A stretch of DNA of 63,117 nucleotides, filler included, from Pelomyxa schiedti (taxonomy: Eukaryota; Protista; Evosea), in NCBI GenBank assembly GCA_020536535.1. It is 14 parts of 14 records of this genome, joined end to end, with 100 filler letters (N's around TTAATTAATTAA, not from the genome) between each part and the next. Parts side by side here need not be neighbours in the genome. Positions count along the whole stretch, not along the records: positions 12,223 to 44,198 come from JAHLWZ010000262.1; 13 more parts are not named here. One strand, 5' to 3'. Shown here piece after piece: positions 13,078 through 43,814 of this stretch (position 1 is its first letter; each line of letters opens with the position of its first letter). The translations under genes and the position numbers were made by a program. The notes below the pieces were generated by a model. It saw nothing but the letters and a program-made list of their open reading frames with translations, did no database searches and was not told the origin of the DNA.

Positions 13078-13216
13078 ATGAGCCACAGGGGGGGGGGGGG
13101 GGGGGGGGGAAAAAAANNNNNNNNNNNNNNNNNNNNNNNNNNNNNNNNNNNNNNNNNNNNNNNNNNNNNNNNNNNNNNNNNNNNNNNNNNNNNNNNNNNN
13201 NNNNNNNNNNNNNNNN

Positions 13217-13922
13217 GGCAGCACACAGGGGTGGCTCATACCGTGGGCACTGTTCCAAGCACAGAGTGAGGTCGGATGGTAACGGCCAGTGACACTGGGT
13301 CAGTGAACCTCTGAAGAGCACACGGAAGTTGTGAAAAAAGAACCTCAGCTGGTGGATGACCGGCTTTTCTTGCAAGTTGCTTAAGATCTGATAGAGACCT
13401 AAGTAGGCTCTGATGATTGTCAAGCATGAAGCACATGGCACCAGGAAGAGCAACCTCAAGTTGTTTCACTGTTGTAGATCCCACAGCGGCAGCCATGATA
13501 ACCAACTTTGCCATGAGGTAAGGGATTGTTCTTACTAGAGGCAACTGACCACTTGTGACAACAAGAACCACTTGCAGGTCATTTGGATGTGAAATCGATC
13601 CAAGTTGAGAGGCACCTAATCTGAGCGCGTCTTCAAGGTTGGGTGTGTTGTGTGGGCACACTGCCCATTGGACCGGTTGCTGAACAACGTCAAAAAGTTT
13701 TTGTGCATCGTTCGTAAATGGACACGCAATCCTGACAGCAGTATCGTATTCTATAATCGTGAAATTTGTCTCATGCGCCTTGGACGATACGAACGAATGG
13801 AGCTCGTACAGTGCTAGACATATCAAATTGAAGCCACTCTGAACGTGTGAACCTACGTCCAGAAGTATTGCTAAGTTAACCCTGGGTAGAAGTACACATT
13901 CCGATACCAAAACACAGGCCAT
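13217..13922 (-). CDS. vWA-domain 5' exon of a vWA-IFI44-like gene (pair 1, divergent from giant gene A)
   Basis: NLAILLDVGSH (degenerate MIDAS), FTIIEYDTAVRIACPFT, PNLEDALRLG, VVLVVTSG form a Rossmann-like vWA pattern. The last 121 bp are the exact reverse complement of 40816-40936. Confidence 0.7.
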
Positions 13923-13950
13923 CAATTTTCGTTTCTGATCAGACCAGTAA

Positions 13951-14048
13951 TAATTATGGTCATTCACGGGAACGAGTGAGTTCAAGCTAACAGGCACCAG
14001 CCAACCGACCCACCTTATAAACCCCCTCTGTATCGTGCAAATAGTTAA
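13951..14048. repeat. ~98-bp dispersed repeat, inverted copy at 42480-42577
   Basis: A 71-bp core (13978-14048) is the exact reverse complement of 42480-42550, and the flanks are near-identical. Confidence 0.9.
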
Positions 14049-14241
14049 GACAAAGTTGTTTTATAAGCAAACATAACACATGAGAACAACAACACTATTC
14101 AGCCCACAACATCCCTCACCCAGACCACGTATCTTACCCGGTCGACCACTTCGGTGGTGCAAGATTTCTTCAGTCTGAGGGATGTTAGAGTCATTCTGAA
14201 GCAAATCTGGAAGGCCTGTTTTCTGCGTTTCGAAACAAAAA

Positions 14242-17200
14242 ATGCAGGTTCCCACACGGGTCGCTGATGCCGTAGGCATACTGAAAAACCTCGAGGCGAT
14301 GCGATTCCCACCATGCGCACAGCGAACCTTGCGACAGGTAATGTGTGTTGTCGCACTTACAAGCTTGGGTACCCCATGCGAGGGACAGCCACCTCTCACG
14401 AAGCTCTGGGAGACCCTCGTAGAACAAATCGCCAAAGAGAGACTCAACAGACCGCAGGTCGACGGTCTCCTCGCTGCGTGTCAGGCGACACTACAAGCAC
14501 CCAGTGACGCTTTGAAGGAACAGCTCAACCAACTTTACCGCCTGCTCGTCCCCTTCGACATCGAGGAGCTGCTTGACTTGCTATCGAAGACCGCGTCCAC
14601 AGCTCAGCTCGTAAACGGCCAGGACATCATCCTGCTACTAGGAGCCACCGGGTGTGGGAAGTCTACGACGATACAATACCTGTTTGGCTGCCAGATGGTC
14701 CATCAAAAGGTTACAGTTGGGGAGGGCTTCATCAACCACATTTGTGCTGCCCAAACTCCAGGTGAACTCACAGGGGTGGTGTCCAGTTTTGAGGCAAAAT
14801 CAGAGACCAGATACATCACAGCAGTTCAGGTCCAACCAAGTCTAATCCAACCTGAAGGTTATATTACTGTCGAGCCACTTTTCCTGTGTGACACACCAGG
14901 CTTCATGGACAACCGCGGACCTGAGACGGATGTTGCAAATGGGGTTGGATTTGTGCAAGCTGTGAAAACTTGCAAGTCTGTCAGGCCGTTTTTCCTCATT
15001 GACGGAAAAGGCATGGGTAGTCGACTGGACAACCTGAGGCAAATTCTTTCCGTTCTGGCTGGATTAATGCCACAACTTGAGTCTTGGACAGAATGCTTCT
15101 CCTTTGGTTTCACAAAGTTTTCACAAGAAGAAGCCACAAATATACGTGGAAACCTTGAACTTCTCAAGCGTGGATTGACACCTGAAGATTCACAAATCCC
15201 TGGTTTCAAAGCCGTTCTGAATGAGATTCTTCGGCAACACCCTGAAAAAGGTATGCAACGAACTGTGATCATCAACCCACTTGATGGGAAACCTGGTTTG
15301 GTTTTCAAAAAGATCCTTTCCCACGATGCTTTGGACGACCCAAACGAAGTCTTTCAGTTCTTCATTGCTCCTCGTTCCAATTCCGCCCTCACTGAGCAGC
15401 TGCGAAGGCTGCAACTGAATATACCAGAGGCACTCGAGAGGGGGGAATTTGCGTTGGTTTCGTTCAGGCTTGTGCAGCTGGCTAAGCTGGCCAAGGTGCT
15501 CAATAACAAAGCAGATATTCTGCACCTTCTGGAAGAGTGCAAAGAACTCACTAACAAGGAACTTGGACACCAGCTCGACGCTGGGGCACGGCAGCTTCAG
15601 GTATTGATGAAAGATGGGTACCAGGCCACCACGGCGGATCTAGATTCTTTCCTGCGGCCCCTGCAGCTCTTGAGAGGCTGTGACGAGACGCTGGGAATGC
15701 TTCACGAGGCAACAGCGGCTGAGACGCACTCGTCCAGGCTCATGAAATTCTTTTTTGAACAAGTTGCACAGCTGGTGAGAACCTTCCAGGGAGAGAAAGA
15801 TGCACTGTGTGAGGCCAACAAAGTGAGACTCGACAAGCTTGCGTTGCTTGGACCTCACTTTCCAGAGGTCAATGCGCATTTTGATGCATTGCTCGCGTCC
15901 GTTTCCACTACTGTCCAAGGTGCAGTCGCAACAGTACAGGATCTTATTGCTTCAAACCAATTCGACGAGGCACGCCAGACATGGGCGAGGCTGGAGGCTG
16001 CCTTGCAGCGTTTTGCGGTGCACGTGGGGCCAACAGTTACCTCTGAGACCTCCCCCAAGATTCGGGCCTTCTTCTTGGCCCACTTGCAGAAGAGCTCTCA
16101 AGAGGCAGATGAGTGCTTCTGCCTGCAAAGCATGACCTCTGACGTCCAGAAGATATCCGACAGTCTTCAAGTCCTTCACTCTTGCCTGCATACCTATGGC
16201 ATTGGTCAGTTATTGGATTTGAAACAGGTGGCTTCACTTAAAGAGCAGCTGGTTGTGCGACTCAGGACCCAGATTGAACTCCTCCATAACCAGATTGTTG
16301 ATCGATTTTCACAGAGCAACGAGAACTTTGTATACTCTCAATGCAAGCAAGACTTTCTAACTATCAAGGCACTTTGTGGAATACCAAATGTTCCCCGGAC
16401 TGTTGAGCAGCTTTTTGAAAAAACGAAATTCTTTGTTGTTGACCAGACTAACAATATCACAAGACAATTTTCACAAGCTGTGGATGCTCTCAAGAGGGGT
16501 GAAGTCGTGGATTTTACCCGTCTGGCACGGGGAATGAGGCTTTTGAGGGACACTGATTGGCTTGAAGAAGCAATCCCTGGGTGCTATAAATCCGCTTTAT
16601 CTGAAGTTGAAGATATAATCTCACTACAGCTGGATCAGACCGAGAGACAACTCCAAGAAATTCGCCTTGAGCTTGGAGAAGAATCAGAGTTGAAGAAGCT
16701 TGCCTCCATTGTGGGTGTTCTGCATGAAATAACCCCTCTTGAGAGGATACCACTGCCAGCCTTGCATGAGCAGAAATGCCGACTTCTGCAAAGCACGCGA
16801 GATATCCTGAAAGAGATTCTCACAATTATACAAGATACCTTCAACCTTGAGAAATACGCAGTTTCTGCTTTACACCAGGGTGTTGAGACATTACTTCTCC
16901 GAAAGAAAAACATTGAGGGCAGCAGTCCAGCCACCCTATTTTTGGCTGAGAAGGGCTATAAAGATGCCCAGGAAATCACGCGAGCCATTGAAGAGAGCAA
17001 GAACACACTCTCCACATTGACATTGTCCGCAACTGGGACTGGAATGGAGAGTGGAAATATCCAGGGATCCAGTGCAATAGGAGCTGAAGTTCTGACAAGG
17101 CAGCAAGAGCTGGCAGAAAGCATCAAAGCAAAAGAGCTGGACTTGCAGCAGTTCCAGGAGTTATCAGCCTCCAAAATTTTATCATCACAGCAGAGGCAGC

Positions 17201-20200
17201 AGCTCGGAGAACTTGGATTCAGTAGTATAGCCCGCCTTGAGAAAAGCATTGTGGATCAAGTACGGCGATGTGAGACTCTTGAAAGTCAGGGACTGCTTTA
17301 CCAGTTCGACAAAGTGGATCCTGCCAGGGCCGTGGCAGCGATATCATTCATAAAGATCCTCGGTACGCAGTTTCGCTGTGGACTCTACAACGATTTGCAC
17401 TGTGCTCAGATCAAAGAAAAGCTGGAATCGTTCCTGACAAAATACTGTGAAAATTTGGTTGTCCGCGTCCACGGAGCCCTTGACAATATTACAATCCACC
17501 TCAATGGCCAGGCTCAGTCGAAGATTTCAGACGATACTGCCACTCTCCTATCCTTGCTGCAGGAGTTGGTCGAGCTGGAGAAATACCCACTGATGATGGG
17601 GTATTTTTTTAGCAACATCAATGTTCTTGCTAGCTCCCGGGATGCTATCTCAATAATTGCAAAGGACCTAGATGCAAGCATTTCCCAGCATTCCATGAAC
17701 AAGGATGTCAGGAGTCTACAAGCAAAACTTGATATCGTGCAGGCACTGTGCCGTCTTGATGCGGTTTGCTCTAACCAGGACTCCCCCAGTTTCTCAGATT
17801 TGAGAAAAAAGTATCAACCTGAAGCACACAGAGAAATTGGCGAGACGGCTACCAACGCAATGAAGTCGTTGGACAAACGTGAGTGGCAGCAGTTGGCACT
17901 GCTTCTTCATGATATTGAATCCAGCAGTCGTGGCAATCAAGCCACACTAAACGCCATTACCAGACCAATTGAAACGAACCTCATAGACTTCTGCAATGAT
18001 ACTAAGATGAAGGCCATTCTACTTGGGCAAGAGATATCAACTGAGTGGCTTGCCTCCATAACCGACATTGTCTCCCGTCTTGATAGCATCAGGGAGGCCC
18101 TCAAATTTCTGTCCAAGTACCTTCAGCTTCCTGCAGATACTGGATCACAACCAGGTTCTACAGCACCGTCATCAAGCGCAATTCCCAGCAACCCCTACAA
18201 CGACGCCATTGAAACTACGAAGCGAGAACTGTGTCAACAAATGATGACAGCAATGAAGAGTGTTGTTGCATCCATTCACAGTTGTCATTACTTAGAGGCA
18301 AACCAAAAGATGGACGTGGTCAAAAAGGCAAAAGGGATCATGGGCTCCCCTTATCTCTCAGTGGAAGCTGCTAATTCTGTTGATAGTTTCACGGCAACTC
18401 TTTCTGAATCACTCAAGAGCCTTGAGAGATTCTACACCACGGCCGAGGTTGGTGAGTACAGCTTCAAGAACCCCCCAAAAGATGTATATGAGAGATTCAG
18501 GCAAGTGTTTGCAACCAATGCTGAGTGCAAAGAAACATGGGAGAAAATTGAGGATGTGGTACGAGATAAGTTCAGAGCCGAACTGAAGAACATTAAAGGG
18601 CTCAGGACACCAGATGAAAGGGCTTCACTGATGAGAAAAGTTGAATTGGCCCTCAACTTCCTCCCCACACACCTCTCACAGACCTTGGGGGACGAATTGG
18701 CACTTCTAAAAAAAGACTTAAAACAGGAGCAAGAGGATTTGGAGGTGCAAAGGAGCTCAGCTCTTCTTGGAGGGGATGCAGAAGAAATTGAACGAATGTG
18801 GAACACCCTTGTTGCAAGAGAGGGAAGAAGTGGAACGACGGTACGGAAGATGGGACAGGAGATCATCGAGCTGGTAAAGAAACACCAAGTTTTGATGATG
18901 GAGACGTTCCTCTCGTCTGGGGATTTGACCAGTGCTGTTGGGGAGATCAAGAAGGTGTTCTCGTTTCGTGGAATGGCGTCGGCACTGCCAGTCATCAATG
19001 TCCTCCTGAGCAACATGTGCTTCCACATCACAGCACTCCCCCCAAAGCTTTTGCCGATCCTTTCAATCCCATCGCTCACAGTAGAGTCTGACGGCGCTCT
19101 TACCAGCGCCTGGTCGCAACTTGTTACACTTCATGGCATCTGGCTATCTGAAAGCAGCAACTCCGACTTAGTTGCCGCCGTGTTTCAGACTCCCGACTTC
19201 CCTACCAAGGTCGACGAGGCCAAGGAGAATATTGTTGTGTATTTCAGGACCCTCCAGAAAAAAATGTTTACAAGCATGGAGTTGAACAACGTGGAAGGGA
19301 TTCACAGTGTGCTTGACCGAGTCAGTGCACTTACTTCGTTCTTTTCCGTGTGCCAGAAAGTGATGCCCTCCCTTTGGGGATCGTACTCAGTGGTGGTGCA
19401 AGAGGTGAAGAAGTTCTTTGCTGCCAAGACCTCGTTCATCCTTGAAGCAGACTTGTGCGCCACTGGAGTGACAGAATTCGAAAAGACACGAACTGCTTTT
19501 TATGCACTTGTGAAGTCCCATGTCGACCTTTTCCGTGAGTCGTCAGGAATTCAGAAGGCACACCCAGATCTTGCCCTCTCTGCTGAGTTACTTGCAGATA
19601 TGAACTCTTCTCTCGTCGCGAAGATCGCCAAGCTTCACGAAGATGCAATGGTGTTTGTGAATACACGGAAGGGAAGAGGAACTGTCACGGAGAAGAGGAG
19701 GTTCAATGACTGCTTCAAAAGCCTCAAGTCATTCAGGGCATCATTGCCTGGGGAGCCAATGACATCCGCTCTGGACAAGGCAATTTCAGAGATTGAGCAT
19801 GGTATCACTGGTTTGGTGGAACAAATTGACAGGGAACTGTCTATGGAAATGGCAGAAATGACAGGGGCGTCAATCCCCATTGATAGGGTAGCCATCAATC
19901 TTATCAAATTGAAACAGCTCGGTGAGGCCTTCCTCCAGTCCTCAGAGACTGTCTCTGGCCGCATTGACGAGTTCATTTCTCGCTTCAAAGGCGCCTCTGG
20001 AGCCACAGGGTGTTCAAAGCTTGCAAGCTTGCTTGTTGACGAGCCCACAGGCATTGGGGCGAGTGTCGTGCAAGACTGCCCTGCTCTGAAGCTGTCAATG
20101 GCCAACCCAGGTTGTCAAGTCCGTTGCAATACAGCCACTATCAAATACGTTCTTGAGAGGCTACGAAGCGTTGACCCAGGTGATATTGAAAAGGAGAAGC

Positions 20201-21251
20201 TGAAAAAATGTTATGATGCCTTCAGCAAGAAGTATGCAAATCTGAAAAAAGTCCACCTCAAACCGGATCTGGAGAATGGGAAGATTTCTATCCTGGCAGG
20301 AATCAAGAAAATTATAACAGGTATTCACATTGAGCATGATGAAATAGCCTCAGAAAGTGACTTGTATTCTTGCACTGCTATCAACTGGACAGGGCCAATG
20401 AATGATAGCCTTCCAGAACTTCTTGCACACATATTCATGCTGTGGACTCTGTCTCACGCGGGGAACTACTTTGAGATTGCCAGTTTCGTGATAGATGACA
20501 ATGACAAGGACAAATACCTGTACNNNNNNNNNNNNNNNNNNNNNNNNNNNNNNNNNNNNNNNNNNNNNNNNNNNNNNNNNNNNNNNNNNNNNNNNNNNNN
20601 NNNNNNNNNNNNNNNNNNNNNNNATAGCCTTCCAGAACTTCTTGCACACATATTCATGCTGTGGACTCTGTCTCACGCGGGGAACTACTTTGAGATTGCC
20701 AGTTTCGTGATAGATGACAATGACAAGGACAAATACCTGTACATCCCACACCCAGCGCAGGTTGTGGCTATACTTCGAATGCTCGGAGTCGGTTACTCCA
20801 GCCGGAAAGGACTGGGACCAATCAAGAACATGATACAGCTGGGTACTGGAGAAGGCAAGTCCGTCGTCCTTGCAGTGGCGAGTATTGTACTTGCGCTTTA
20901 CGGGATGCAGGTGAGCTGCGCCTGCTACTCGTCGTACCTGAGCGAGAGGGACTGGTCAGACTTCAAGCAGCTATTCACGATGCTCAACGTTGAGTGCCAA
21001 ATACGGTATGGCACGTTCGACGTTCTGTGTGAGGCAATACTCAACAAGAACGGCAACCTGCGGGAAGGGATCAAGAGGCTCATAACTGAAGGAATATGGC
21101 CCATAAAGATGACAGACACAGCAGTACAGCGGCCACACGTTCTGCTTGTGGATGAGATTGACGTGTTCTTCAACAAGGACTTCTACGGCAACGTGTACTC
21201 GCTATCCTCGCCGCTACAGGACCCGTGCATCATGCGGCTCACGGACTTCAT
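14242..21251 (+). CDS. Giant protein A: P-loop GTPase - long helical/coiled-coil region - SecA-like SF2 helicase (3' end missing here, probably 41037-42438)
   Basis: Intronless ORF of more than 2,200 codons. G1 LLGATGCGKSTT, G3 LCDTPGF. SecA_DEAD-like PHPAQV...IQLGTGEGKSVV...YSSYLSERD...YGTF...LLVDEIDVFF. Confidence 0.88.
20405..20742. other. False gap: 119 bp duplicated on both sides of a 100-N gap (20405-20523 = 20624-20742); same tract also at 35707-35825
   Basis: Direct sequence identity. Merging the copies restores a continuous reading frame. Confidence 0.9.
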
Positions 21252-22224
21252 NNNNNNNNNNNNNNNNNNNNNNNNNNNNNNNNNNNNNNNNNNNNNNNNN
21301 NNNNNNNNNNNNNNNNNNNNNNNNNNNNNNNNNNNNNNNNNNNNNNNNNNNCCCTAAGAAATGTGGAGAGTGTAGTCGGTTTGCTCATGTAAGGACCAAC
21401 CACACAGAAACATTACATTACATAGGTACTTCGATGATTATATATCTAACATGTATGTATTCCTACCTCTACATATGATTTATTGAGCCTATTATTGTAA
21501 CAGAACAAAACTTGAGGGTGCTCTTTTGGAAAATATGGCTAAGAAAGGACATTCAGTTGCAAGTTCCGATAATGCCTTGGGACCCCAAGAGTTTGCCACT
21601 GCATGCCTGTAAAAAGGAGCAAACCTTAGAGGCTTTTGAGCTACAAATTCGAGTAAGACCAGCGTACATAAAATAATATGTGTACTTACTTGGGTTGGAA
21701 GTGGTGGGAGAAGGACTTACGTAATTTCTCAATTGCCGCTGCCTGATACTGGATCACAAGGAAACACGCGACCCACACGTTTTTGAGAACACCTGCACCA
21801 CAGTAAGCCCAAATCCTGGACTCACACCGCTAACCATCGTACACCAGTGCCACCACCGGCATAGTCGCGCCCTTGCCCCCGGTTTTTTTGATGAAAATGG
21901 TTTTTTTGGCTTCGCTTATAAAGACACTCCGCAACATTTCCTTTCCTTAAACTTTTTAACTCCGTTCCTTAAACGTTCCTTAAACTCATTAACTCCGTTG
22001 CCTAAACGCGCCGGAAACTCTACAAGCGGGAATAAAAATTGGTTTTATCCCCGGAGGAGGGTTGAAGGGCGATATTCGGTTTTTCATTCAACTTGGAAAC
22101 TATTTTTTTAGGGTTGTTCAAATAATTTTTTCTGCCCATCTTCAAAAAAAAAAAAAAAATACAAGCAAACAAAGAGGCAAACCCGACACCCAAAAAAAGG
22201 ACTCCTCCATAACGCAACAACGGA

Positions 22225-23677
22225 ATGTCTGACTGCTACTTTGTGCTGCTGGGGGACGTTGGGTCTGGAAAATCCACACTGTTTGAGAAGATCACTGACA
22301 CAACTGGCCGCAGTTCTTCCTCCTCTACTTCTTTCTCACGTACTTCAAAGGTGTGCACAATCAATGCCTTATTTTGCTCGTTGTGCAAACACAACAATAA
22401 CAAAAAAAAATAATAACAAATAATAACAAACAATATCAAATAACAACCAAACAACAACAAAAAAAATCCAAATCACAAAAAAAAAGGTTGTACAAATGGC
22501 AAAGTACAACGTGGCTGACACCCCTGGACTGAAGTCTGGTGCTGAGAGGGTTGACCATGCCATGCACATACTATCATGCCTGGAATACCGCCCAGTGAAG
22601 TGCCTCATTGCTGTGTGCTCAATGAAGGATCGCATTGACGGAGTAATAGACTCTGTGTCAGAGCTGATAGTTCCGTTCTGGTCAGATTTTGCCCAGCACC
22701 TTGCATTGATCATCACAAAGCAGGACCTCCAGCCCCACATCTCCAAAGTTGAAGTGCAGCAACGCATGATCGAACTTGGGATCCCAAACGTGCTGGTGAC
22801 TCACAAGGCCACACCTCGACAAGAGCTCCTCCTCTTCCTCGACCAGCTGAAGGCAAGGATTCCAGGCTCTGTGTCATTCAGGGTTGCACCCACCCAACTT
22901 TACAGGTACTTCAACTTGGCTGAAGCTGACTTTGGATACATGGCTGACATGAAGACGTTTGTTGACTTCTTCAAGGACCTTGTGGCAACTGGTGAGAAGC
23001 ACCTGCTCACACTGCAGGGGAATGCCAGGAGAGACTTTGCGTTCTCCTTCAAGGCGTTCATGTCTGATCTCATGCCTCAGTTCCAGTCTGAGTTTGCTGG
23101 CAAGCATGACGTGAACGCTCCCAAGACACTTCTGTATGCCATGGAACTGCAGAAGAGGTGCCACAGAGAGCTGCTGGCAGTGAGGCGCCTGTGCAGGGAA
23201 TATGGGCTTGAGAACGACAACTCCACATACAAGAGCTGCCCTTACTGTGGCACCGTGTACGTGAAGGTGCAAGGCTGTGATGGCACCACGACATGCGGCA
23301 ACAGGCCGTCTGTGGCTGATGGTCACAGCTTCAGCATCTTTGAGTGGACATTTGAAACTGCAAGGGCAACGATATTCAGCTGGTCAAACCCAAGGAACAC
23401 AAGGGCAGTTGAGTGCTCATCTGCAGTGAACACAAGCCAGTAGTGGGGCACTGGCAGGAATGCAGAGCTTGTGAAACCTTGTGGAAGGCAAGTAGCCTGG
23501 AAGGATATGACTCCTGTTCAGCAGCCCGCAGACTGGGCCGTTATTGGTGAAGTGGCTGACACCAGGGCTCTCGAGACCCCCCTCGATGCCCAGACTGAAA
23601 GGATGTTCAAGTCCGGCACAGTTGCTATCCCAAGGACTCTTCCAGGTGTCGAAGTTGAACACAAAGGAAACCTGTGA
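22225..23677 (+). CDS. P-loop GTPase with C-terminal Cys zinc-binding motif (RBR RING2/IBR-like); in-frame TAG at 23441-23443
   Basis: G1 GDVGSGKS, intron, G3 DTPG, G4 TKQD. CPYCGTVYVKVQGCDGTTTCG, then PCGRQVAWKDM in the same frame after the TAG. Confidence 0.75.
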
Positions 23678-23994
23678 AACAAACAAAAAAACTTTCGGTG
23701 AAAAATAGTGAGCTGAATCAAAAAAACACCACGTTTCTAAAGTTTAGCTTCTGTTGGTGAATCGGGCGTAACAACAACAACAACGACAACAACAACGACG
23801 GGTTCCAGATGGTGGAGATTTGGAACGGCCAATGGAGTTTTCTCGAAAATATTAAACAATTTCTTTCTTTGCACCCCAGGGCTGTCTCTCCACCGAAGGT
23901 CATAAATATACAAATATCGTTGGAAGCGTGGCTTAGAGTCACTTGGGAGAAAACGATCGGGAGTCACCGCAACCAGTTTTACTGTGGGCACACA

Positions 23995-25400
23995 ATGAGC
24001 CAAAGCACTTCCTCTCCAAACAAGAAAGACCACCCAAACCAGCGTCCCGTCTGGTTACCAAAGGAGTTGCATGACACACTTCAAAAACTTGTGGGGAAAG
24101 GACATGTGCTTTCCCCTCAGCAGTGCTGTATGCAGTTCAACAATCACTCCCCTCTGCATCCAACAACAGTGACTCAACTTGTGACAAGCTGTTGCAAGCA
24201 AGGTGCATTCGCTGGTTGCACAACTGGTAAAGTAATTACTTTGGAGCAACTTCCAAGTAGAAGTGACATACCTAATATCAAGAGACACTGTCAGAGCTTC
24301 ACTCCTGTGTTCATTGCATACCACTCTGCTGTGGAGAATACTACAGTGTGCAGAGTGCTGAGTGTCTCTTTCACTCCACACTGCTCAGCTGAAGAACTGG
24401 CAGAACATGTTGTCTCCATGTTACACAGAGTTGATTTGGCCTCTGTACCTCCTACCACATTTATTGCAGATAATTGCTCTGGGATGCAAGGAGAAGTAGG
24501 AGGTACCATTGAGTTAGTGAGGAAAAAGTTGAGCAAAGGATTTCCCAAATCCAAGGAGTTTTAAAGTATATTAATGACCACTGTGCAAGCAACCACTGTA
24601 CTTTGAGGCAGATAGTCTATGCCATGAGAGCTTGGTTACAGAATCCTATACTTTGAGTGCAGCTATCTTTCCTTTCTGAGTTTGCTCCTTTTCAGATTTC
24701 AATGACAGAGTGGGCGGAAGCACCAGATGTTGAGCACAATTTACCAGCATTATTCAAAGCCCATCTTCTCCCTGCACATATGTATTGCTCTGTGTTACCA
24801 TCCCTGTGTTAAAAGAGTTTTTAGGTGTACTTTCGGCAAGACCAGTTAAATCAGATGTCTGAGGATTTGTCAACACACTTTCACAAAACTGATAAGTTGT
24901 CTCCCTTGGATGATGTGACACTTGGTATTGATGTGGCTAAAGCTTTCCTGGGAGCAGAGGTTCAATTGCAATTTTCACCAAGTGGAATGGTCTAAAGAAA
25001 GACTTGAGGAGGTATGTGCATGATAGCAAAGGAGGGAAGCCTGCTATTGCCCCTTACTGCTCCTTGGATAAATTTGGTAGGGAAGTCTGCTTTTCACAAC
25101 CAATTACTACACAAAAGGTGAAAAGTTCTTTTAATGAGCTAGACACAATGTTGGTGCCAGGGCCACAAATCAGCACTAGGTTATTGGAGGCCAAAGTGTG
25201 CTATAAATTGAATTCCATCAACCCCATCAAGAACTCCATTAGTTCTTCATCCAAGAATTTTCCCACACAGAAGAGCAATCTTATTGCCCTCTCTAAACAC
25301 CTCTTAGGAAACACTCAATACTCTATGGAGGAATTCACAATTGCCAAGAAATATAGTAGTTGAGCCACAGTTACCTTTCTGAACAAATCCCATCACCACT
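23995..25400 (+). mobile_element. Degenerate hAT-superfamily (ZNF862/DUF4371-like) transposase relic
   Basis: SAEELAEHVVSMLHRVDL...FIADNCSGMQGEVGG resembles the hAT TAE.I...D(G/N)AS.M.G...GV block. After a frameshift, DHCASNH approximates the CxxH motif. Multiple downstream stops. Confidence 0.5.
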
Positions 25401-26593
25401 GCTTCCTTACTACAGCCGGATAATTCCCACTTGGATGATGATGCTTCCTTAGAGCCAGGCAATTCGACGTTGGATGAGGTGGAGTATGGTCCTGATGCAG
25501 AAGATCCCTTTTGGCCTCCAGATGAACCTCCTATTGTACCACTTGTAACACTGCTCAAAAAGAAGCTTCACAATACTTGACACCTGAAACTCCCTTTATT
25601 GAGGCTCCCCAAGTGCCTCTGCCTGTCCCACAGCCTCAAATGACATCAGCTGTCACACAACCACCTCAAATGACACCAGCTGTCACACAGCCACTTCAAA
25701 TCACACATGCCTCCCAGGTCCAGCTGCCCTTACAACTTGCCACAGTTCAGGCCTCTTCCTTAAGCAGTACAGTAATTCTGCATTGGCCGTCCCAAATCAG
25801 ATTGCTGTGATTTGTGTTGGATGTACCACACACCGTCAGTGAACTGGTGTTGGTTTCTGTGGTGTTTAGTACATGGTGCGTTTGTGATGAGAATGAGGCC
25901 TTCATTCTCAAAGGGCTCTGCCATTGGTATGCACTTTGTCTCCTGCTATTTAAGTTTGTTTTATTTCGTTTTCATATTCGTTTTCGTTTTTGTTTTGTTT
26001 GGTTTTGTTTTGTTTTTTATTCTTGTTCCCACATCCACAGGTCCATGAAGATAATGATGATGAGAAGCTGGCACTATGGTAGGTTTCCATTTATCTTCTC
26101 TGTTTTTCTTTTTCGACTTCACATTTGATAACCAGGTGGTGTTTTAGATGCTAGTTGAGAGGCAGACAGGAGCAGGGAGATCTGAAGGCAGAAGCGGGCA
26201 CGCACCCAGAAGAATGTGTGTGCAGCCCATTCGAGCAGTATTCCTCTTCTTCTTTGAGTTACCCAATATACTCAAGATCCTTTCCCGCACTCAACCTGTA
26301 TGTGAGAGTGCTGGCATCGGAGCCCACTGGTATGTTTCTTCTTTTCCTCGTTTCACCTTGTCCTACATGTACCATGGTAAATCACCCTCTCCCTTTTCAT
26401 CGTCACCCCACTCAAACATAATAGGTACCCTCTGACTGACGCCGCCCAGGAGAATGGTGTGCAGCTCTGCTCTGAGTTTTCACTTTCAGTGTCCCCCCTG
26501 TATGCCCTCACTTCCACTCCAATCCTAATAAGCCCGAGGCACTCCAACCTCAGAATCACGACTTAAACCTCATAAATCGAAACAACAAACAAA

Positions 26594-26730
26594 CAAGCAA
26601 CCATACGCTGATGTTGTCTTCTTGCTTGTTTCTGAAGTCTGAGAGTGTATTCGGCTCAGTGCTGGGCAATACTCATCATAAGTTGTTTTCAAGATTATCT
26701 GGATTGCACAGGAAACAGTGGTAGTCAGTG
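26594..26730. repeat. Diverged direct duplicate of 43903-44146
   Basis: Shared blocks AAGCAACCATAC...TTGTCTTCTTGCTTGTTTCTGAAGTCTG and AAGTTGTTTTCAAGATTATCTGG...CAGGAAACAGTGGTAGTCAGTGATTC. The 26.6-kb copy lacks roughly 110 bp of the middle. Confidence 0.85.
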
Positions 26731-26988
26731 ATTCTCAATTTTTTTGCGTCACTTTGGCCTAAACAGGACTTCTAAGAAGAGGGTTCTGTGAATGGCCATA
26801 ATTAGCAGCAACTTGGCGCCCAATCATCAAAAAACCGGGCTCCCTGTGGCGAGGTGTCGCGTATGATCAAGGGGAAGCGCTATTCTATTATTTTTATCTG
26901 TTGTTTAGCACCATAGCGACAATTAGTCACCATTAGTGCTTTAGCTCTTCAAAAGGCACTCGCCACACTCCCTTTCAAGGATTTTTTT

Positions 26989-28947
26989 TCATGAGATCAA
27001 CTTGGTGAGGTGGTTTGCTCGGTGCAGTGCTGCGTGCCTGGCATTCTCGGAGGGCTGCAAGCCCTGCCTCAGGTTTGCTCTGGCTACTACCTCATTGATG
27101 ATACTGCATGTCCTTTGTCCTGACTCGGTGTGCTTCAGATGTGTAGTTCTCCAGCAGGAAGAGGTCTTCAGCCTGCATGCCAATAGAGTGCAACTTTTTG
27201 AAGATTCGAAGAAGCAAAGGGGAGCTGGCTTCATTGCAACCAAAGACAGGAGAGAAGTTGCAGACAACAATGGGCTTGTAGCCAGCGTCTACGGCCGCGC
27301 GCACGTGAACGTCAACAAAATGCTCAAAGCTGCAGCTACCTGGCAGGCCCTCCGTGAGGGGGATTACGAAAATGACTGCATCCATGGGGCACTTGGGCTT
27401 CGTTGTTCTCAACCACATTGCTGGGTAAACGTCAACCTTCGGTGTGTTGTTGGGCACTAGGCCATTGAGGAAGTCCACAATCTTAAGCTTGGTGTAGGAT
27501 CCATCCGACACTCCCCATGTGTCCCAGAACTTCAGGTTCAACCTGTTGCCAATAAAACACCCAGGAGGATGGGAACCATCAACAAAGTCCTTCATGCTCC
27601 AGCTGGAGAATGCCTGTGTCCCATTGGAAGTTGTTGGAACTGCAGAAACCAGTGAGGAACTACTGGAAAAGAGAGACGCCATCCCATTGATCAGTGAGCC
27701 TGGTGGCCACCAACGTTGTTAGAGGAAATGAACACCAGGAGTAAGGACTAACTTTTTCCGCTTCCAGAAATTCCCCACAGCAATACATTCAGGGGCTTGT
27801 ATGTGAAGAAGTCCTTCAGCATCCAGCCTATCGGTTGGAATTGGCCACAAAAAAAGCTGACATTAATACATACTTAACGACGGCAAAATTCCAACACGGA
27901 AGTCTGCATATTCGTGGGTACTGAATTCCATGAAGAGTAGTTCAGGGCACCCAGTCTTCCCAGAAAGCGGCCTCTCATTTGGCATCAGATTCAGCTCACC
28001 AGCATATTCCCCACTGATAGGTTGGGGTATCACAACCTCCATGGGAGCAAAGTGCTTGCTTCCTTTAAAGTATACTTTTGCCCCCTGTGGCGGGGGTGAA
28101 AAGCTCAGTTCAGTTGAGCATAGCTCTTTCCATAGTAACTACCTGAGCAATAGAGCCTCGGCCAACAGGTTCCAGAGAAAACCTCAACGAGAGGGGATCT
28201 GATATGAATGTGAGTCCCGCATCATGATTGTGAAAGAACGTGAGCCTTGCTGGTGCATTTTGTCTTGTTCTAGAACGCAGTTCAAAGTGAGCTCTGCAGA
28301 ACGCTTGAACTGTAGGAAGCGCTGGGGTTGCGGTGCTCAAGAGTGCCCCATCAAGTGGCACATTGCAAAATACCGCATTGGGGATGACTTGCCCTCGGCA
28401 CTGCTCTAAGAGCGCGCTGACGGTGACTACGATGGGCTGCAGGCCCTTGGCCACCTGGCTGTGTGAGAGCATTTCGCAGAGGGCGCTGAAAGCATCCGAA
28501 AACGTTTTCTTTGGTCGAGGAGATGAAGGGGATATCCCTGTTGCAACCAAAAGTTAGTTTAAGGGTGTGCCGTAACTATCATTAACTATCCAGGGACACA
28601 ATGAGCTCCGCCTTATCAGCGGTGAAGGGACACAGAATTTGAAAGTAATCGCTGAAGCAGGTCACGCATACTGGCGCACCAGTCAAGGACTCGAGGAGCG
28701 CTCGCACCAAAGAGACATGTGAGTCTGCACGACTGAAGACCTCAACACTGTTCCACGGGTCCAGGGACCAAATTTCCGTGTCTGTAGCAGCAGAACCCCC
28801 TGGATCTAGGAGGGTAAGATGAGGAGCGGTGAGGGGACAGATGAGGGCTGTTCAACTTGTTGTCACTGGTCTGTTGTCCAACAACACTACAACACAACAC
28901 GAATGTTGTCCGAGCGGAAAGACCTCTGGTATCGGTTGGAGGTACAT
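26989..28947 (-). CDS. vWA - linker - IFI44-like GTPase protein (pair 2, divergent from giant gene B)
   Basis: Predicted MYLQPIPE...CCVVVLLD (vWA beta1), VCVTCFSDYFQILCPFT, TFSDAFSALCEML. Spliced Walker A PLNVLLWGISGSGK|SSLINGMASLF, FWDTWG, MDAVIFVIP, GYKPIVV, DLFLLENYTSE...KDMQY matching the IFI44 C-terminal NY..E...D motif. Confidence 0.78.
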
Positions 28948-29678
28948 GTTTGAGTTTATTTTTTTCCTTGATTGATCAAAGATACTTTGAGAATCAGACC
29001 CCAGTGCCAATACAGTACTTTGTCAGACAAAATCGGAAGGGATATTGGTTCTGATGAAATTAATTTGAAAGAGGGCAGTCCACACATACCTACGCAATTA
29101 GATGCACTTTGGCTGGGAGTAAAGAAGGTGGATATGTCAGAATCGTAACAGAAAGGTTCAGGACTCAGCCCAGCTGGAGTGGAGTTGTTGGAGGAAAGCA
29201 GAAACAGTGTGCCTGCTTATATGATGAAGGTCTACAACCACACATAAGAGGTTCGAAAATCAGGAACATATAAGTTGTCAAAAGTAGTAAAAAAAAAAAC
29301 CTTCCATGTATTTTCCTTTGAATTGGTATTTTGAAAATACATGGAAGGTTTTTTTTTTACTACTTTTTGCCTTGTAGTTGTCTGACATCTCTATTTTTTT
29401 GAAAAGTACAAGCTGAAACAAACCTTGCCTTGTGTAGGCATACAGGGCTTTTGGATTGTTGATTTCCACACATTTGTAACCACATTTCTTTGTGTATTCA
29501 GCACGCATCACAACTTCATTGGCTTTCGTTGAGAGTGGTTTTCGCTTGTCATGGAGTGTGGGTGGTCTTCACTCAAACAAAACCCTTCATTCCGCAGTAC
29601 CTCACACCGGTCAACCTTTTTTTTTGGCAGCTTAGGCAAACTGCAAGCTGCAAAAACAAAGAGGGTGAGCGCGACGGG

Positions 29679-32600
29679 ATGGCCACGGCCAGCGGAGCAC
29701 AGCCACCGCCTACGGCAAGCGTGGCGGGGGAGCTGCGGCGGGTGGTGCGACTGGCAGAGAGGCGGGCCGCGGGGGAGGACGTGGAGGCCGAGGGAGGCGA
29801 GGCGTGGCGGGCCCTGCGAGAGCTAGCAACGGCGGAGGGGCTCTGCACTCAGCAGGCGTCGTCTGTGCTGGACGAGTGCTCGGAGCTGTGGAGGGCGGCG
29901 CCGTCGCCGCTGAGGATGGACAGGCTGAGGGAGCGGCTCGGGGCCTTGAGGCGTATGCTGGTCCCGTTCGACGTGGAAGAGCTCCTGTCGCTACTAGAGA
30001 GGGCCGCCGAGGCCGCGAGGGCCGTGGAGGGGAAGAGCGTAGTCCTGGTGCTCGGCGGCACGGGGTGCGGCAAGTCCACAACCGTGCAGTACCTCTTCGG
30101 CGCGAGGATGGCGCTGAAAGACGTGCGCGTGGAGCAGGGCGTAGTGCCACACGTTTCCGTGGAAGGGAAGCCGCCACCAGAGCTGGAACACATCGTCGCC
30201 AGCTTCGAGGCTATGTCTGAGACCAGGCACGTCGCGGTGGTGGAAGTCAACCCCGACCTCCTTGTAGGGCTGCCAGGCCTGGACACGACGGACGACGGAA
30301 GCTGCGGCAACAGGTTGTTCCTGTGTGACACGCCAGGTTTTGGTGACAGCCGCGGCCCCGAGGTCGACGTGGCCAACGCCTTCGGGCTGGTCAAGGCCCT
30401 GCAAGGGTGCCACTCGGTTTGGCCCCTCCTGCTCGTTGAGTCGACAGACATCATGGCCGAGCGGCAGCAGAAACTTAGGCAGGTACTTGCGATGCTCGAG
30501 GATCTCATCCCCACGCTGGCTCCCTACGCCTGCTGCTTCTCCTTCGGTTTCACCAAGTTCTCTGCGGAGGACAGCGCCACGATCCGGGGCCAGCTCGAGA
30601 CCCTGCAGCGTGGCCTCGTCCAGGACTCGTCATCCGGAACCGGATTCAGGGTGATGCTCAACGAGATGCTGAAGCAGCACAGTGGGCGCATATCAAAGTG
30701 TCTGGTAATCAACCCCCTGGACAGGAACCCTCGCGAGGTTTACAGGAAGGTACTGGCACATCCGCCGATAAAAGAACCAACAGAGGTGTTCCGCATCTGC
30801 ATTCCCCCAAGTTCAAAGTCCGCCTTCAGCCAGCAGATGGAGACACAGCTGTGCTGTGTTACCAGAGCCATTCAGAGGGAAGAGTTCCTGCTTGTGAGGA
30901 CCTGGGTTACCAACCTGGAAAAACTCGTGATAGCTGCAGTAGGAGAGTGGGGAGAGGTAACGCACTGGCTGACCAGGTGCAAGGACGCAGCAAGGGAGCA
31001 GCTCCAAGAGAAGGTGAACGCTGGAGCCCAGCAAGCACGGAGGTACATGGACATCAGGTCAACGAAGCCCACAGCTGAGGACCTCGACTCGCTGGTGAGG
31101 TCTTACCAGTTTCTAGATCACTGCGACAGCATCCTTTCTGATGCTCTGGGTGACCAGAAGTTCTCTCTTCAACTCGAGAGGTGCCTCGAGGAACAGGTAC
31201 TTGAAGTGCTCCACGAAAGCCTGATGGAGGGTTATGACCCCCTGTCACAGGCAAACCAAGTGTGCCTGGAAAAGCTCTTGGCACTTTGCCCGCACTTCAG
31301 AACCGCCAGAGAAACGTACCACAAGATGGTTCCCAGGGTGCATGAGAGCCTGGCCTCTGAGGTGAGCAAAGTGAAATGCTCCGTTTCCTCTGGTGACTTC
31401 GCTGGGGCTGTGCTTGGTTCCAGGTTGCTGAAGGATACACTGGTGCGATTCGAGGCCCACGTGGAACCCACCGCCGCAACGCGCAGTATCGGCCAGATCG
31501 AGTCCCATTTCCTCACCCACCTGCGGGATGTGTTTCACACCACTGAGAGGTGCTGCTGCGTTGGGGCCCACTTTGATAAGGGGAGCGAGGAGCAACTCTC
31601 TCGGGGTTTGTCCGTTCTACAGGTCTGCATCGACGCCACTCACAACGTCAAAGAGCTGGCCCAGGTCTCGGAGCAGGCATCGGACCTGAAGGGACAGCTG
31701 GTGTTCCAGATCACGACACAGATGGAGAACCTCCACACGCAGATCACACAGCAAGAAATCAAGGGGAAGCTCGATTTCTCACGCTGCAGGCAGCAGTTCC
31801 TCACGATGAAGGTGCTCTGGTCCCTGCCTTTCACTCATGCTGCCGCTACTGGTACTGCTGCCTTCACTCCACTCCAGACAACTAAGGGTGGTATCAGACA
31901 GATTTACTCCAGAACACAGAGTTTCTTTGCCACACAGGTCCACAGCCTGGTGTCAGATTTTGTGGACACCTTCGACGGCTTGCACGCGGAAGAGTCTGTC
32001 GATCTGTCACCCTTGACCCGCCGTCTGAAGCAGCTGAAATTGAACGAGTGGCTTGAGGAAGCCATCCCTGGCTGTTGCACATCTGCCATGCGTGAAGTCG
32101 AAGACTGCCTCAAGGAGCATATGGAAAGCCATGGACGATGGTTGGATGACGTTCACCTCGATGTTGACTGCAACGCAGATTTAACACAGCTCACGCCAAC
32201 GCTTCTGTTTCTGGAGGCAGTCACCCCTCTTGAGGCAATCCCACTCGCAGCCGTAGTGGAGATGAAGAAAAAGCTTCTGGAGCGCATTAGAGGACTTCTT
32301 GGCGCTGTTCTAGACGGAATCCAGGACGCCTTCGACCTTGAGAAGCACTCCCTCTCGGCGCTGCTCTGCGAGGTCGAAAACCTGAGGGCCACGAAATCCA
32401 AGATGGAGGCTGGCAGCCCTGCCTATCTGTTCCTTGCAGAGAAGGGCTACCGAGATGTCAGAGAGCTCGAGCGCGCCATCGAAGACAACAAGGGTGCCCT
32501 GTCTGCCCTGGTAGGCCCGGCGGACCTGGTGGAATCCACAAATAAAATGGAGCTCCAGTTGAAGCGTTTCCGGGAGCTGCAGGCATCGTGGGTACTCACG

Positions 32601-35600
32601 CCCCAGCAGAGGCAGCTTCTCTTGGGGCTCAAAGTCACCAGCATCGTCCGGCTCGACAGGTGCATCGAGGAGAAAGTGCGGCGTTATGAGGCATTAGATA
32701 GGCAGGGCCTGCTTTACAACTTTGACCAAGTGGACCCGAACCACGTGGTGGACTCACTCTCTTTCATGAAGGTGCTATCGAAGGAGCTCCGCTGCGGGCT
32801 ATACAACGATCTCCATTGTACCCAGATCAAAAGAAGGATAGAGGAGTTCATGACTAGATACTGTGACACTCTGGCCCAAAGGGTGTCAAGGGGGCTTGAG
32901 AATATCTCAGACAACATCCATCATGACGTGCTGCTGAAAATCTCTGCAGATGATGTGGCAGCTCTCCTGGACCTGTTACCTGAACTGAAGGAGCTGGTGA
33001 GCAACCCCACCCTGAAGCAGTTCTTTCGCGGGCACAGCAGCATGGTTGAGGAGATCAAAGCCACCCTCTCACAGATTGCCTCTTATCTGGAGCACAACAG
33101 TGAGGTATCCGTCAAAGGCATCACAACAAAACTGGCAAATGTGTCCTCTCTCTGTCCTATGGAGACCATCCTCTGGTCTGACAGCCGTCCTTTCTCTCAA
33201 TTGAGGAGGGCACTCCTAGACCAGCAGCAAGAGCAGATAAAACACAGTGCCAGAGAAGTATTTGTAGCACTGGAAAAAGACAGGTGGATGGAAGTGGGGC
33301 AATGCCTATCCGAAATCTGTGAAAGTGGAAGCCAAGCAACCATTCGGAGTTCCATGGCGCAAGTGAACACCCAGCTTCAGAGGTACTGTAATGATCTGAA
33401 AATACAAGTTTCTCAGCTCTCTCCAGAGGTCTCAGACCAGTGGTTTTCCCTGCTTTCTAACATTGGCTCTTGTCTAGACAAGTTGAAAATGGCGGTTGAA
33501 GTTCTATCAACATGCAGGTTGCCACATGACACGCCTTCAAGCTGCAGGCCAGACCCCACATCCCAGCACAGACTTGTGAAAGACATTGAGCTGGAGTGTT
33601 CTAAGTCCATTCTCAGTGCCATGGCATCCCTGGTGAGCCTTGTCTGGAAGTGTCAGTACACAGAGGCTCTGACGAAGGTGGAAATCGTCAAAAAAGCTCA
33701 GAAAGCCATTAGATCGCACCTCTCGGAAGAGGCTTCACACAGTGTTGACGATTTTGAAGTCTCCCTTCGTGCTTCGTTCCAAAGTCTGATTGACCATTAC
33801 AAATCTGTGAAGATAGTCTGTTATCATCAGATTTTTTCTCCAAAGCTTGTCTTCAAACAACTCAGTCCCACATTCTCCTCCAGCATGCTATGCAAAGAAA
33901 ACTGGGAAGCAATCGAGGATGCCATCAAGCACAGATTTCATGTTGACATTGCACAGATACAAGAAATGCAAGCTCCCTTTGAACAAAAGCAAAAATTACT
34001 GAGAGAGGTTGCTCCTTTGCACTTTCTCCCTGAAACCCTCAGTTCTCCACTTGAGAAGGAGATTTCACAGATAACTGCCTCGTTGGATGCAGAGCACAAT
34101 AGGTTGATAACTGAAAAGTTGTCAGCCTTTGAAAATGAAGATCCCCCTGAAATTTTACGAATTTGGAACACGTTACTAAGAGGAGAAGGAAGAAGTGGGC
34201 CGATGGTCCAAAATATGGAAGTGGAGATAGATAAGATATTAAGAACGATGTGTACTTTCGCAGTGACTTCTTTCTCCAGTGGTAACTTCACAGTTAGTTT
34301 TCAGAATATTAAAAAAGTATTTACACTCTCTGAGCTTCAAAGTGATATTTCAAGTATTCACATCCCAATTGATGATATGTGCTTATCTGTGCATAAGTCT
34401 CTAGAAAAGACTTTCTCTTTCTTCTCAGATCAAACTCTTTCAGTTGAACTGGATTCTACCCTTAGTGATGCCCTGGCACAAATAATTGAGCTCCACAAAG
34501 TCTGGCAGTCGTATTCTGATTTACCTGACTTTTTGAGGATCCTTATTGGCTCAGATTTCACACAGAGAGTGAATAACACAATGGAGAGCATTGGTGCCTA
34601 TTTAAGAAAACTTGAAGGGGACCTAAATTCCTGCCTGTCGTCCTTTGATGTTACTCACCTCCAAACTGTTCTGGATCGGGTTCATTCCATTCCTTTCTTT
34701 TCAACTCTTTGTCACCAAGTTGTACCTTCATTATCTTGGAAGGATTTCTATTCCTTCTGCTTGGAGAAAGTGCATGACACCCTTGAATCTGTCCGGGCCT
34801 TTATCTTGGAAGTGGAAATTTGTAATCCTTCAATATCATACCTAGATAAGGGAAGCCTTGTGTGCCAACCCATTAAGTCAAGGCTCAACTTTCTAAAACA
34901 TTTATGGACACTAAAAATTAAACACCAAGACCTTAGATTAACACCAAAAATAATTGAAGAACAAACAAGCATAGTTTTTGGTAAGATAACCAACATTTCT
35001 CAGTGCATGATTGGCATTGTAAAGGAGTATAAGCTTACAGTAAGGTTCGAGGATAAACTTGTAGCTTCAAAACTATTTCACAGCTATTTCACCAGCTTGA
35101 GGATATATGCAGAGCAGCTGGAGGAACCTTTTTGTGCATTCATACAAATGAGTGTCAATGAAGTTAAGAGAAATCTATGGGCTTTAATTGAATCTGGGAA
35201 AAAAAACCTGCAAATGCTATCAGATGTATCCAGAGTTGCAGAAGAACTCATTGCCCTTAAACAAACTGGTGAACATCTATTCTATTCTGAAGAGGTAACA
35301 ATTTTCATTGAAGCCTTCATTCAGGAGTTCAAACAACGCCATTGCAGCCTATATAAACTAGGGTGTGCATTAATTGGTGATAACTCTGGCATGGGTATTG
35401 TGGTTGCACACGACTCTTCCAGTTTGAAGGCCTTTCTCCCCCACACCAGAGTTTTTGCTCCTGAAACAAGAAGTATGGAATACATTCTTACAAAACTAGA
35501 AGGAGAGGATATTGACTCCACTCAAATTGCACAGCTTTTAGTAAAGTTTGATTCTACATACTCTAATCTACGGAGGATGTTTCTTGTGGCTGATTTAGAG

Positions 35601-43756: not shown

Positions 43757-43814
<58 letters not shown>

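Follow-up and report, generated by a model that had tools for sequence, protein, structure and literature searches.

The stretch of DNA analysed here, referred to as the window, comprises 63,117 nucleotides, filler included, from the genome of Pelomyxa schiedti, an anaerobic archamoeba that lives with bacterial symbionts. Positions 12223 to 44198 of the window come from record JAHLWZ010000262.1 of assembly GCA_020536535.1 (window position = record position + 12222). On this record, members of two gene families lie side by side, namely giant genes encoding a G-domain, a SecA-like helicase and a vWA domain (family 1, the giants), and smaller genes encoding a vWA domain, a beta-sandwich and a GTPase of the IFI44 type (family 2, the vWA-IFI44 module). 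Every known P. schiedti giant has a family-2 sequence adjoining it or inside it, and one of them, giant 2, carries a whole module at its C-terminus. This vWA-anchored fusion and the repeated adjacency are the strongest evidence for a coupling of the two families. In literature searches, no description of the giant family, of family 2 or of the JAHLWZ010000262.1 locus was found.

Runs of N divide the record into five sub-contigs, A (12223-13116), B (13217-20523), C (20624-21251), D (21352-40936) and E (41037-44198). The first-pass annotation of the window described a head-to-head module, a vWA-IFI44 gene divergent from a giant GTPase-SecA gene, which was repeated twice in strongly diverged form, with each pair inside a gap-free contig. 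Both pairs were confirmed. In pair 1, copy 1 of family 2 starts at ATG 13922 on the minus strand and giant 1 at ATG 14242 on the plus strand, separated by a spacer of 319 bp (13923-14241). In pair 2, copy 2 starts at ATG 28947 (minus strand) and giant 2 at ATG 29679 (plus strand), separated by 731 bp (28948-29678). Pair 1 lies within sub-contig B and pair 2 within sub-contig D. Moreover, in independent Logan assemblies of four runs from the same sample (X1, X2, X3 and X4, the last being single-cell RNA), the pair-2 junction is spanned by one X1 contig (27000-32900) and one X2 contig (27721-30162). The strong divergence was also found in tblastn comparisons, in which the two giants are 35% identical over ~2100 amino acids (aa), the IFI44-like parts of copies 1 and 2 are ~30% identical and their vWA parts are not detectably similar. 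The proposed domains were borne out by Pfam, Foldseek and a protein-language-model atlas. The description of a module repeated twice holds for the divergent pairs but not for the families, as the record also contains the fused module, a third stand-alone copy and a further giant tail, bringing family 2 to four copies on this single scaffold.

The giants consist of a G-domain of the MMR_HSR1/AIG1 kind, a helical region of ~1600 aa, SecA-like DEAD and Helicase_C lobes and a terminal vWA domain (PF25106). Giant 1 (14242-21251, plus strand), delimited by its open reading frame (ORF), an overlap merge described below and homology, is intron-free and contains the G-domain, the long helical region and the SecA-like DEAD N-lobe before it is truncated at the gap 21252-21351. 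Giant 2 has an intron-free first exon of 2770 aa (29679-37988, plus strand), which is an uninterrupted ORF with homology to giant 1 beginning at aa 10. In this exon Pfam places the G-domain at ~29946-30940, followed by the helical region, the SecA-like DEAD lobe at ~35706-36850, Helicase_C to ~37630 and the start of the vWA domain, the metal ion-dependent adhesion site (MIDAS) of which is intact (DASNS). The ORF 29679-38081 is 100% identical to an NCBI entry named 'helicase carboxy-terminal domain protein [Pelomyxa schiedti]' (P0001). The record annotates giant 2 from an internal Met at 31224, so that 515 N-terminal amino acids with the G-domain are lost. Since the frame is open from ATG 29679 and homology to giant 1 begins at residue 10, the true product is ~3176 aa. 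The giant tail on sub-contig E (41038-42438, plus strand) encodes Helicase_C, P-loop_SecA and the canonical C-terminal VWA_4 (PF25106, 33.2 bits against a gathering score of 27), and its NCBIfam SecA score is far below the cut-off. A terminal vWA is canonical in the giant family, being present by Pfam in this tail, in a bacterial member and in Tetrahymena.

The two giants are 20-50% identical until residue ~2005 and 80-100% identical as proteins from there across the first motor lobe. At the nucleotide level, 20386-21251 and 35688-36343 are 84-96% identical, and the preceding 6 kb are at most weakly alignable as DNA. This sharp boundary at the start of the SecA-like motor looks like the result of an event of the gene conversion kind.

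In giant 2, homology changes from the canonical giant tail to the module type at aa 2650-2655, with resemblance to the former ending after residue 2650 and to the latter starting at residue 2653-2655, at the first vWA strand and the MIDAS, and a single open frame leads from the helicase straight into the module-type vWA. The 3' exons (38035-39384, plus strand; in the P0001 exon map 38035-38301, 38347-38565, 38608-39096 and 39139-39381) encode the remainder of the vWA together with the beta-sandwich and the IFI44-like GTPase with the P-loop GSGKS, as supported by the exon map, an AlphaFold2 (AF2) model and Foldseek. The four introns predicted at this end are short and of the P. schiedti type. 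Two introns of the fused module coincide in the alignment with introns of copy 2, which indicates that a stand-alone gene was the source of the module and that the copying took place at the level of DNA. From an alignment of 38 sequences, the AF2 model of the fused module reached a mean predicted local distance difference test score (pLDDT) of 86.6 and was confident across the first junction, with an alternating strand-helix pattern in the vWA region; from the single sequence the pLDDT was only 36. Sequence and model together show that the canonical C-terminal vWA of giant 2 was replaced by a complete vWA-IFI44 module, and the fusion argues for functional coupling of the two families.

Among the stand-alone genes, copy 2 (Pelo_3380, P0020, 532 aa; 27092-28947, minus strand) comprises the vWA domain, the beta-sandwich and the IFI44-like GTPase according to the annotation, RNA contigs and the exon map. 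Its six exons are located at 28947-28858, 28803-28588, 28535-28143, 28084-27872, 27825-27751 and 27697-27095, and its P-loop is intact (GSGKS). Three of the five introns, all GT-AG, were seen directly in X4 RNA contigs (as CT..AC joints on the plus strand), and the ends of X4 contigs are consistent with a fourth. In three of the four runs (the RNA run X4, X1 and X3) an extra AGCAGCAG was present at 27094/27095, just before the stop codon, so that the deposited C-terminus of the protein may not be the true one.

Copy 1 consists of a vWA exon starting at ATG 13922 (13239-13922, minus strand, within the minus-strand ORF 13236-13997; Pfam VWA E-value 5e-6, above the cut-off) and of 3' exons for the beta-sandwich and the IFI44-like GTPase (12223-13116, minus strand; ORF 12171-12680; 53-64% identical to P0008 and P0015 by tblastn), which are truncated by the contig end. 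In its P-loop, GSGMS, Met replaces the Walker-A Lys. Of copy 3, the vWA exon is present (40237-40936, plus strand; 38% identical to the copy 1 vWA by tblastn; Pfam VWA_2), located downstream of giant 2 in the same direction and truncated by the gap 40937-41036. The MIDAS motif reads DVSTS in copy 3 and is degenerate in both copies that are head-to-head with giants (DVGSH in copy 1). Pfam profiles of the VWA clan scored above the gathering score for copy 1 (PF00092, 27.2 against 23.8 bits) and copy 3 (PF13519, 34.3 against 27), and below it for copy 2 (20.7 bits) and giant 2 (17.1 bits), both of which are homologous to the other copies. Among the family-2 paralogues, the vWA domains are 35-54% identical, as opposed to 63-89% for the sandwich and GTPase. 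The family is rare, with 52 matches at E ≤ 1e-3 among 1.84 billion representatives (phmmer). We conclude that family 2 is an intron-rich amoebozoan family with a vWA domain, a beta-sandwich and an IFI44-type GTPase.

IFI44 and IFI44L are well-known interferon-induced immune genes (PMC11682996). The assignment of the module to this type was examined with the AF2 model of the homologous fused module of giant 2 as the Foldseek query. Against the Swiss-Prot AFDB, the first match was Dictyostelium Q54DL7 (DDB_G0292188; E-value 4e-29, residues 16-471), ranks 2-6 were IFI44 or IFI44L of human, mouse and chimpanzee (E-values 1.5e-14 to 1.3e-12, probability 1.00), and the next G-domain matches (FZO-like, EngB) had E-values of ~1e-6 or weaker. 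In the protein-language-model atlas, 'interferon-induced protein 44-like' was found at rank 2 with a score of 0.95-0.96. Together, these results make the vWA-IFI44 label sound for the G-domain. The GTP-binding motifs GSGKS and WDxWG are intact in copy 2 and the fused module, but the P-loop of copy 1 is GSGMS. The Foldseek alignment begins at IFI44 residue 8 and covers the ~110-aa beta-sandwich; the sandwich had no Pfam TLD match, no TLDc structure was among the 50 PDB fold matches listed, and the atlas score for the sandwich alone was 0.46. A vertebrate source, which the name IFI44 might suggest, was rejected, the organism being an amoebozoan. For amoebozoan IFI44 relatives, literature searches found no partner or pathway.

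The giant family has at least 139 long members, with E-values down to 1e-172, in ciliates, Reticulomyxa, rotifers, Hydra, Arcella and Hexamita, and the motor is 35-46% identical to that of eukaryotic and bacterial members. By blastp, three proteins (P0002, P0003 and P0004) match giant 2 co-linearly at both aa 83-450 and aa 2000-2650. A sequence search of the PDB with the C-terminal 800 aa of the giant 2 ORF gave no match. Neither an NB-ARC nor a STAND domain was detected by Pfam, the only nSTAND matches being insignificant and confined to the P-loop (E-values 0.02-0.03).

The nearest relatives of the Pelomyxa giants are encoded on contigs with bacterial neighbour genes (LptF/LptG, PdxA, TraI_2 and ABC transporters), in a recurrent operon composed of the giant, a gene of ~180 aa and a second G-domain protein of ~1350 aa. 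Across six bacterial contigs (L008, L009, L010 and those of P0061, P0063 and P0065), a gene of 171-205 aa follows the giant in five, and in four of these five it is followed by a protein of 1319-1398 aa that repeats the G-domain of the giant and has a weak CBUA0006_C match. One bacterial contig carries two giants in tandem, adjoining a phage-type integrase gene. In the window, only the G-domains of the giants themselves match these operon partners, and the ~180-aa gene is without a counterpart. The coding sequence of the Pelomyxa giants runs over 8.3 kb without an intron. Genes of this genome contain ~7.4 introns on average (7.43; PMC8887013), and an intron is encountered every few hundred bases. 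Because they are intron-free in an intron-rich genome and their nearest relatives are in bacterial operons, the sequences point to acquisition of the giants from bacteria and subsequent duplication in place. Their present location is nuclear, since giant 2 lies on the same gap-free contig as copy 2 with its RNA-confirmed introns. Bacterial contamination was rejected because of the contig shared with spliced genes and because of the GC content, which is 48-50% in these giants and 30-34% in those of the two bacterial contigs measured.

Outside this scaffold, no further giants were found in P. schiedti. Six other vWA-IFI44 modules are present at three P. schiedti loci, two at L004, three at L005 (JAHLWZ010000164.1) and one at L006 (JAHLWZ010001357.1). 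In Acytostelium, the module is located among unrelated genes and without a giant, and no dictyostelid giant was among the family members listed, though dictyostelids have the module. Conversely, no vWA-IFI44 neighbour was found for the giants in Blepharisma and on the bacterial contigs, and blastp revealed no IFI44-like module within any of the 120-odd giants retrieved. In the G-domain tree, copy 1 belongs to a young subfamily of five members with a support of 99 in the Shimodaira-Hasegawa-like approximate likelihood ratio test (SH-aLRT) and is 81% identical to L004b, and copy 2 and the fused copy are on long separate branches. As deep support in this tree is weak (SH-aLRT 82 for the P. schiedti clade), only the five-member subfamily is used in the argument.

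The spacers of the two pairs were compared with each other and with the regions upstream and downstream of giant 2. Nothing was found in common beyond an inverted repeat of 98 nt with 96% identity, one arm of which is in the pair-1 spacer (13951-14048) and the other at 42480-42577, beginning 42 nt past the stop codon of the giant tail on sub-contig E. If sub-contig E is the tail of giant 1, this giant would be flanked by inverted repeats. In the middle of the pair-2 spacer there is a perfect palindrome (29280-29367) with arms that include A10/T10 runs and a loop of 17 nt, which occurs once in all the sequence examined. Either a small inserted element or a hairpin insulating both genes would be possible. 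At L005 all genes are separated by spacers of 200-250 bp, and adjacent genes of this genome are in general 200-300 bp apart. The pair spacers are ordinary intergenic distances for a compact genome, and the head-to-head arrangement alone is ordinary. Orientation is also mixed, two copies being divergent upstream of giants and copy 3 co-directional downstream of giant 2.

The assembly was built from amplified single cells, with SPAdes contigs (k up to 121) joined by P_RNA_scaffolder, that is, by RNA read pairs (PMC8887013). The two pairs are thus putative neighbours, placed together by RNA read pairs. The gap 20524-20623 is an artefact and the frame of giant 1 is continuous across it. The ends of the two sub-contigs overlap exactly by 119 bp (20405-20523 = 20624-20742), and merging them gives a single open frame of 2263 aa. 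In contrast, the gap 21252-21351 is a true discontinuity, where the frame closes 2 codons past the gap and tblastn detected no giant-like coding sequence in 21352-22224. Giant 1 ends at the equivalent of giant 2 residue 2221, and sub-contig E starts at the equivalent of residue 2386 and extends to the canonical C-terminus of the giant family (aligned to the extreme C-termini of its members). Sub-contig E may be the missing tail of giant 1 or a piece of a third giant. In the former case, paralogous RNA reads would have led to mis-joins at C-D and D-E, where the joins make no coding sense. The first 121 nt of sub-contig B are the reverse complement of the last 121 nt of sub-contig D (40816-40936), a length that corresponds to a k=121 graph vertex and indicates that copies 1 and 3 are identical at the end of the vWA exon. 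The gap 13117-13216 is inside an intron of copy 1, since the paralogue P0008 loses no residue across it (aa 49-242 align to 13760-13245 and aa 244-470 to 13043-12225 by tblastn). The RNA-pair joins A-B and B-C suggest that copy 1 and giant 1 are transcribed, mapping of paralogous reads being an alternative cause.

Some annotated features of the record deserve mention. The 687-aa gene at 40237-42438 is a chimera over the gap 40937-41036, combining the copy 3 vWA exon with the Helicase_C/vWA tail of a giant. A further G-domain gene is located at 22225-26566 (plus strand), with the P-loop GDVGSGKST in exon 1 and DTPG and a Cys-rich tail in exon 2 (22496-23443). Its annotation begins at 22496 and comprises 530 aa. 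Pfam gave no match for it, and blast no similarity to the G-domain of the giants; an ORF within its annotated span (23809-24564) is likewise without a Pfam match. The annotated 217-aa gene at 42786-43535 (minus strand) is nearly all Thr/Ile/Cys/Ala-rich low-complexity sequence and its reality is doubtful.

Taken together, we consider it fairly likely that this is a real nuclear locus of P. schiedti at which the giant and vWA-IFI44 families became physically coupled, as a lineage-specific development. The two families probably work together, because giants adjoin vWA-IFI44 genes and one giant carries the whole module. In the mechanism that we envisage, a giant of bacterial type would have been acquired and then duplicated in place. 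The vWA domain would be where the helicase giant and the IFI44-like GTPase dock, with the link made in cis in giant 2 and in trans, through vWA-mediated association, for the neighbouring stand-alone genes. Giant and GTPase could form a nucleoside triphosphate-driven assembly for sensing or signalling in conflict or immunity. Its variable side would be the fast-evolving vWA and N-terminal parts, and its conserved side the GTPase and motor parts. The head-to-head orientation would have arisen locally, through segmental duplication in a genome that is compact, and would not be a conserved obligatory bidirectional-promoter unit.

Several observations weigh against this reading. None of the six other P. 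schiedti modules has a giant beside it, as assessed over the whole contig for two of the loci and within +/-10 kb for the third, and the four other members of the young subfamily of copy 1 are not beside giants either. At L005, module and protein kinase genes alternate, and one product unites a module with a kinase (1167 aa: VWA_2, Pkinase, G-domain), and at L006 the module is within a protein of 1698 aa (P0012) that has vWA matches and Pkinase; protein kinases are thus a second type of partner for the module. The RNA run X4 yielded spliced contigs over copy 2 up to 28748 and none over 28773-32900, a region that includes the first 3.2 kb of giant 2. This does not support co-expression, but the evidence is weak, because the contigs derive from one low-depth single-cell library and the target transcript is ~10 kb. 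For none of the parts did PADLOC report a meaningful match to a defence system. The order of the sub-contigs on the record is unsure, and the splice junctions of the fusion are based on the annotators' model, homology and the confident fold rather than on RNA. In the same way, bacterial transfer is deduced from nearest matches, gene neighbourhoods and intron absence and not from a rooted tree, and coupling and docking from sequence, the fusion and models.

The best surviving alternative is a historical accident, which we regard as possible but rather unlikely. A bacterial giant would have landed in a vWA-IFI44 cluster, the segment would have been duplicated, the adjacency would be neutral and the fusion a chance exon-capture. 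In its favour, family 2 occurs in tandem arrays elsewhere, so clusters exist without giants, and the restriction of giants to this scaffold means that all pairings may stem from a single event. The degenerate MIDAS motifs of the head-to-head copies and the mutated P-loop of copy 1 also speak for it. On the other hand, the fusion swaps the vWA precisely at its first strand, with frame, MIDAS and P-loop intact and a confident fold, and the arrangement persists despite divergence to ~30% identity. Furthermore, a C-terminal vWA is canonical in giants, which makes a vWA-based link sensible.

The first-pass annotation went further and proposed an obligate, co-regulated pair. A functional link is plausible in the light of the fusion, but an obligate pair on a shared promoter is unsupported. 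The idea that each divergent pair is an obligate sensor/helper unit on a bidirectional promoter, as in RRS1/RPS4 and RGA4/RGA5, is in our opinion improbable. It would explain why both pairs keep short spacers despite ~30-35% identity, and the giant 2 fusion demonstrates that both families can act within one polypeptide. However, if the two pairs arose by one duplication, they are not two independent observations, and the survey of other family members, in this genome and beyond, did not support the proposal; nor did the co-directional copy 3. Modules occur without giants at L004-L006 and the dictyostelid locus, and giants elsewhere occur without the partner. Also the spacers, of ordinary length and without common sequence, the loss of the P-loop Lys in copy 1, the lack of an NB-ARC or STAND domain and, with little weight, the failure to see co-expression in X4 argue against it.

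Finally, it is very improbable that the junctions are artefacts, as chimeras of multiple displacement amplification (MDA) or scaffolding, or that the giants are symbiont contamination: the single-cell MDA assembly scaffolded by RNA read pairs, the senseless joins C-D and D-E, the identical 119- and 121-bp stretches at contig ends and the intron-free giants with bacterial relatives would fit such an origin, but both head-to-head junctions are inside gap-free contigs, contigs of two separately assembled runs cross that of pair 2, a gene with RNA-confirmed introns shares the contig of giant 2, which itself has four predicted introns of the P. schiedti type at its 3' end, and the GC content differs from that of the bacterial giants.

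With coupling of the two families as the favoured explanation, the repeated adjacency and the single vWA fusion at this locus yield a concrete hypothesis, namely that the vWA domain mediates the coupling of helicase giants with IFI44-like GTPases. The locus probably also illustrates the domestication of a 9-kb bacterial gene by a symbiont-bearing amoeba, the gene coming from a giant family that is widespread in protists, rotifers, cnidarians and bacteria, with a patchy occurrence in ciliates, foraminifera, rotifers, Hydra and amoebae. A bolder proposition, which we put forward as speculative and unlikely, takes the fusion as a Rosetta stone. IFI44-type GTPases would then be the vWA-docked output arm of giant G-domain/SecA-like helicase sensors, in a conflict system common to bacteria and eukaryotes and probably derived from bacteria. 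If true, this would place the poorly understood IFI44 family in a mechanistic context for the first time and offer an amoebozoan model in which it is tractable.

When compared with known proteins, the Pelomyxa giants share their whole domain architecture with eukaryotic and bacterial giants (named 'helicase carboxy-terminal domain' or 'SecA DEAD-like N-terminal domain' proteins, from Tetrahymena, Blepharisma, Reticulomyxa, bdelloid rotifers, Hydra, Arcella and Hexamita). The IFI44-like module, however, is neither carried by nor neighbouring those retrieved, and the bacterial ones are in operons. With SecA and SecA2 they share the DEAD-like motor domains (PF07517, PF21090; NCBIfam E-value ~1e-11), but only the motor aligns, the giants are 3-4 times longer and they score 43.6 bits against a cut-off of 862. 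For Pfam SecA_DEAD, giant 2 scores 17.8 against a cut-off of 24.6 and its homologues 31-39 bits. An orthologue of SecA was therefore ruled out, the NCBIfam score being far below the cut-off and no match extending outside the motor domains.

The module has the type of G-domain found in IFI44 and IFI44L, including, in the alignment consensus, the P-loop GxxGSGKS, the WD(P/T)WG switch and the FLNG motif. It differs in its N-terminal vWA, in the fusion of one copy to a giant helicase and in the ~110-aa beta-sandwich before the G-domain, the TLDc identity of which is not confirmed. Moreover, Pelomyxa is an amoebozoan without an interferon system, and amoebae are not known to have interferon. Closer counterparts are Dictyostelium Q54DL7 and Acytostelium XP_012750968, which combine vWA, beta-sandwich and IFI44-like GTPase (phmmer E-value 2e-29), but are uncharacterised stand-alone genes with unrelated neighbours, dictyostelids not being known to have a giant partner.

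Compared with RRS1/RPS4 and RGA4/RGA5, the protein classes differ, neither Pelomyxa partner being a nucleotide-binding leucine-rich repeat receptor or containing NB-ARC/STAND, and the pairing is not conserved among paralogues or orthologues, one copy being co-directional. What the Pelomyxa pairs have in common with these immune receptors is the divergent orientation, the short spacer and the rapid divergence of paralogues. Immune gene clusters combine variable recognition-like parts with homogenised enzymatic parts, and the divergence pattern of the giants and family 2 appears to resemble that of such clusters.

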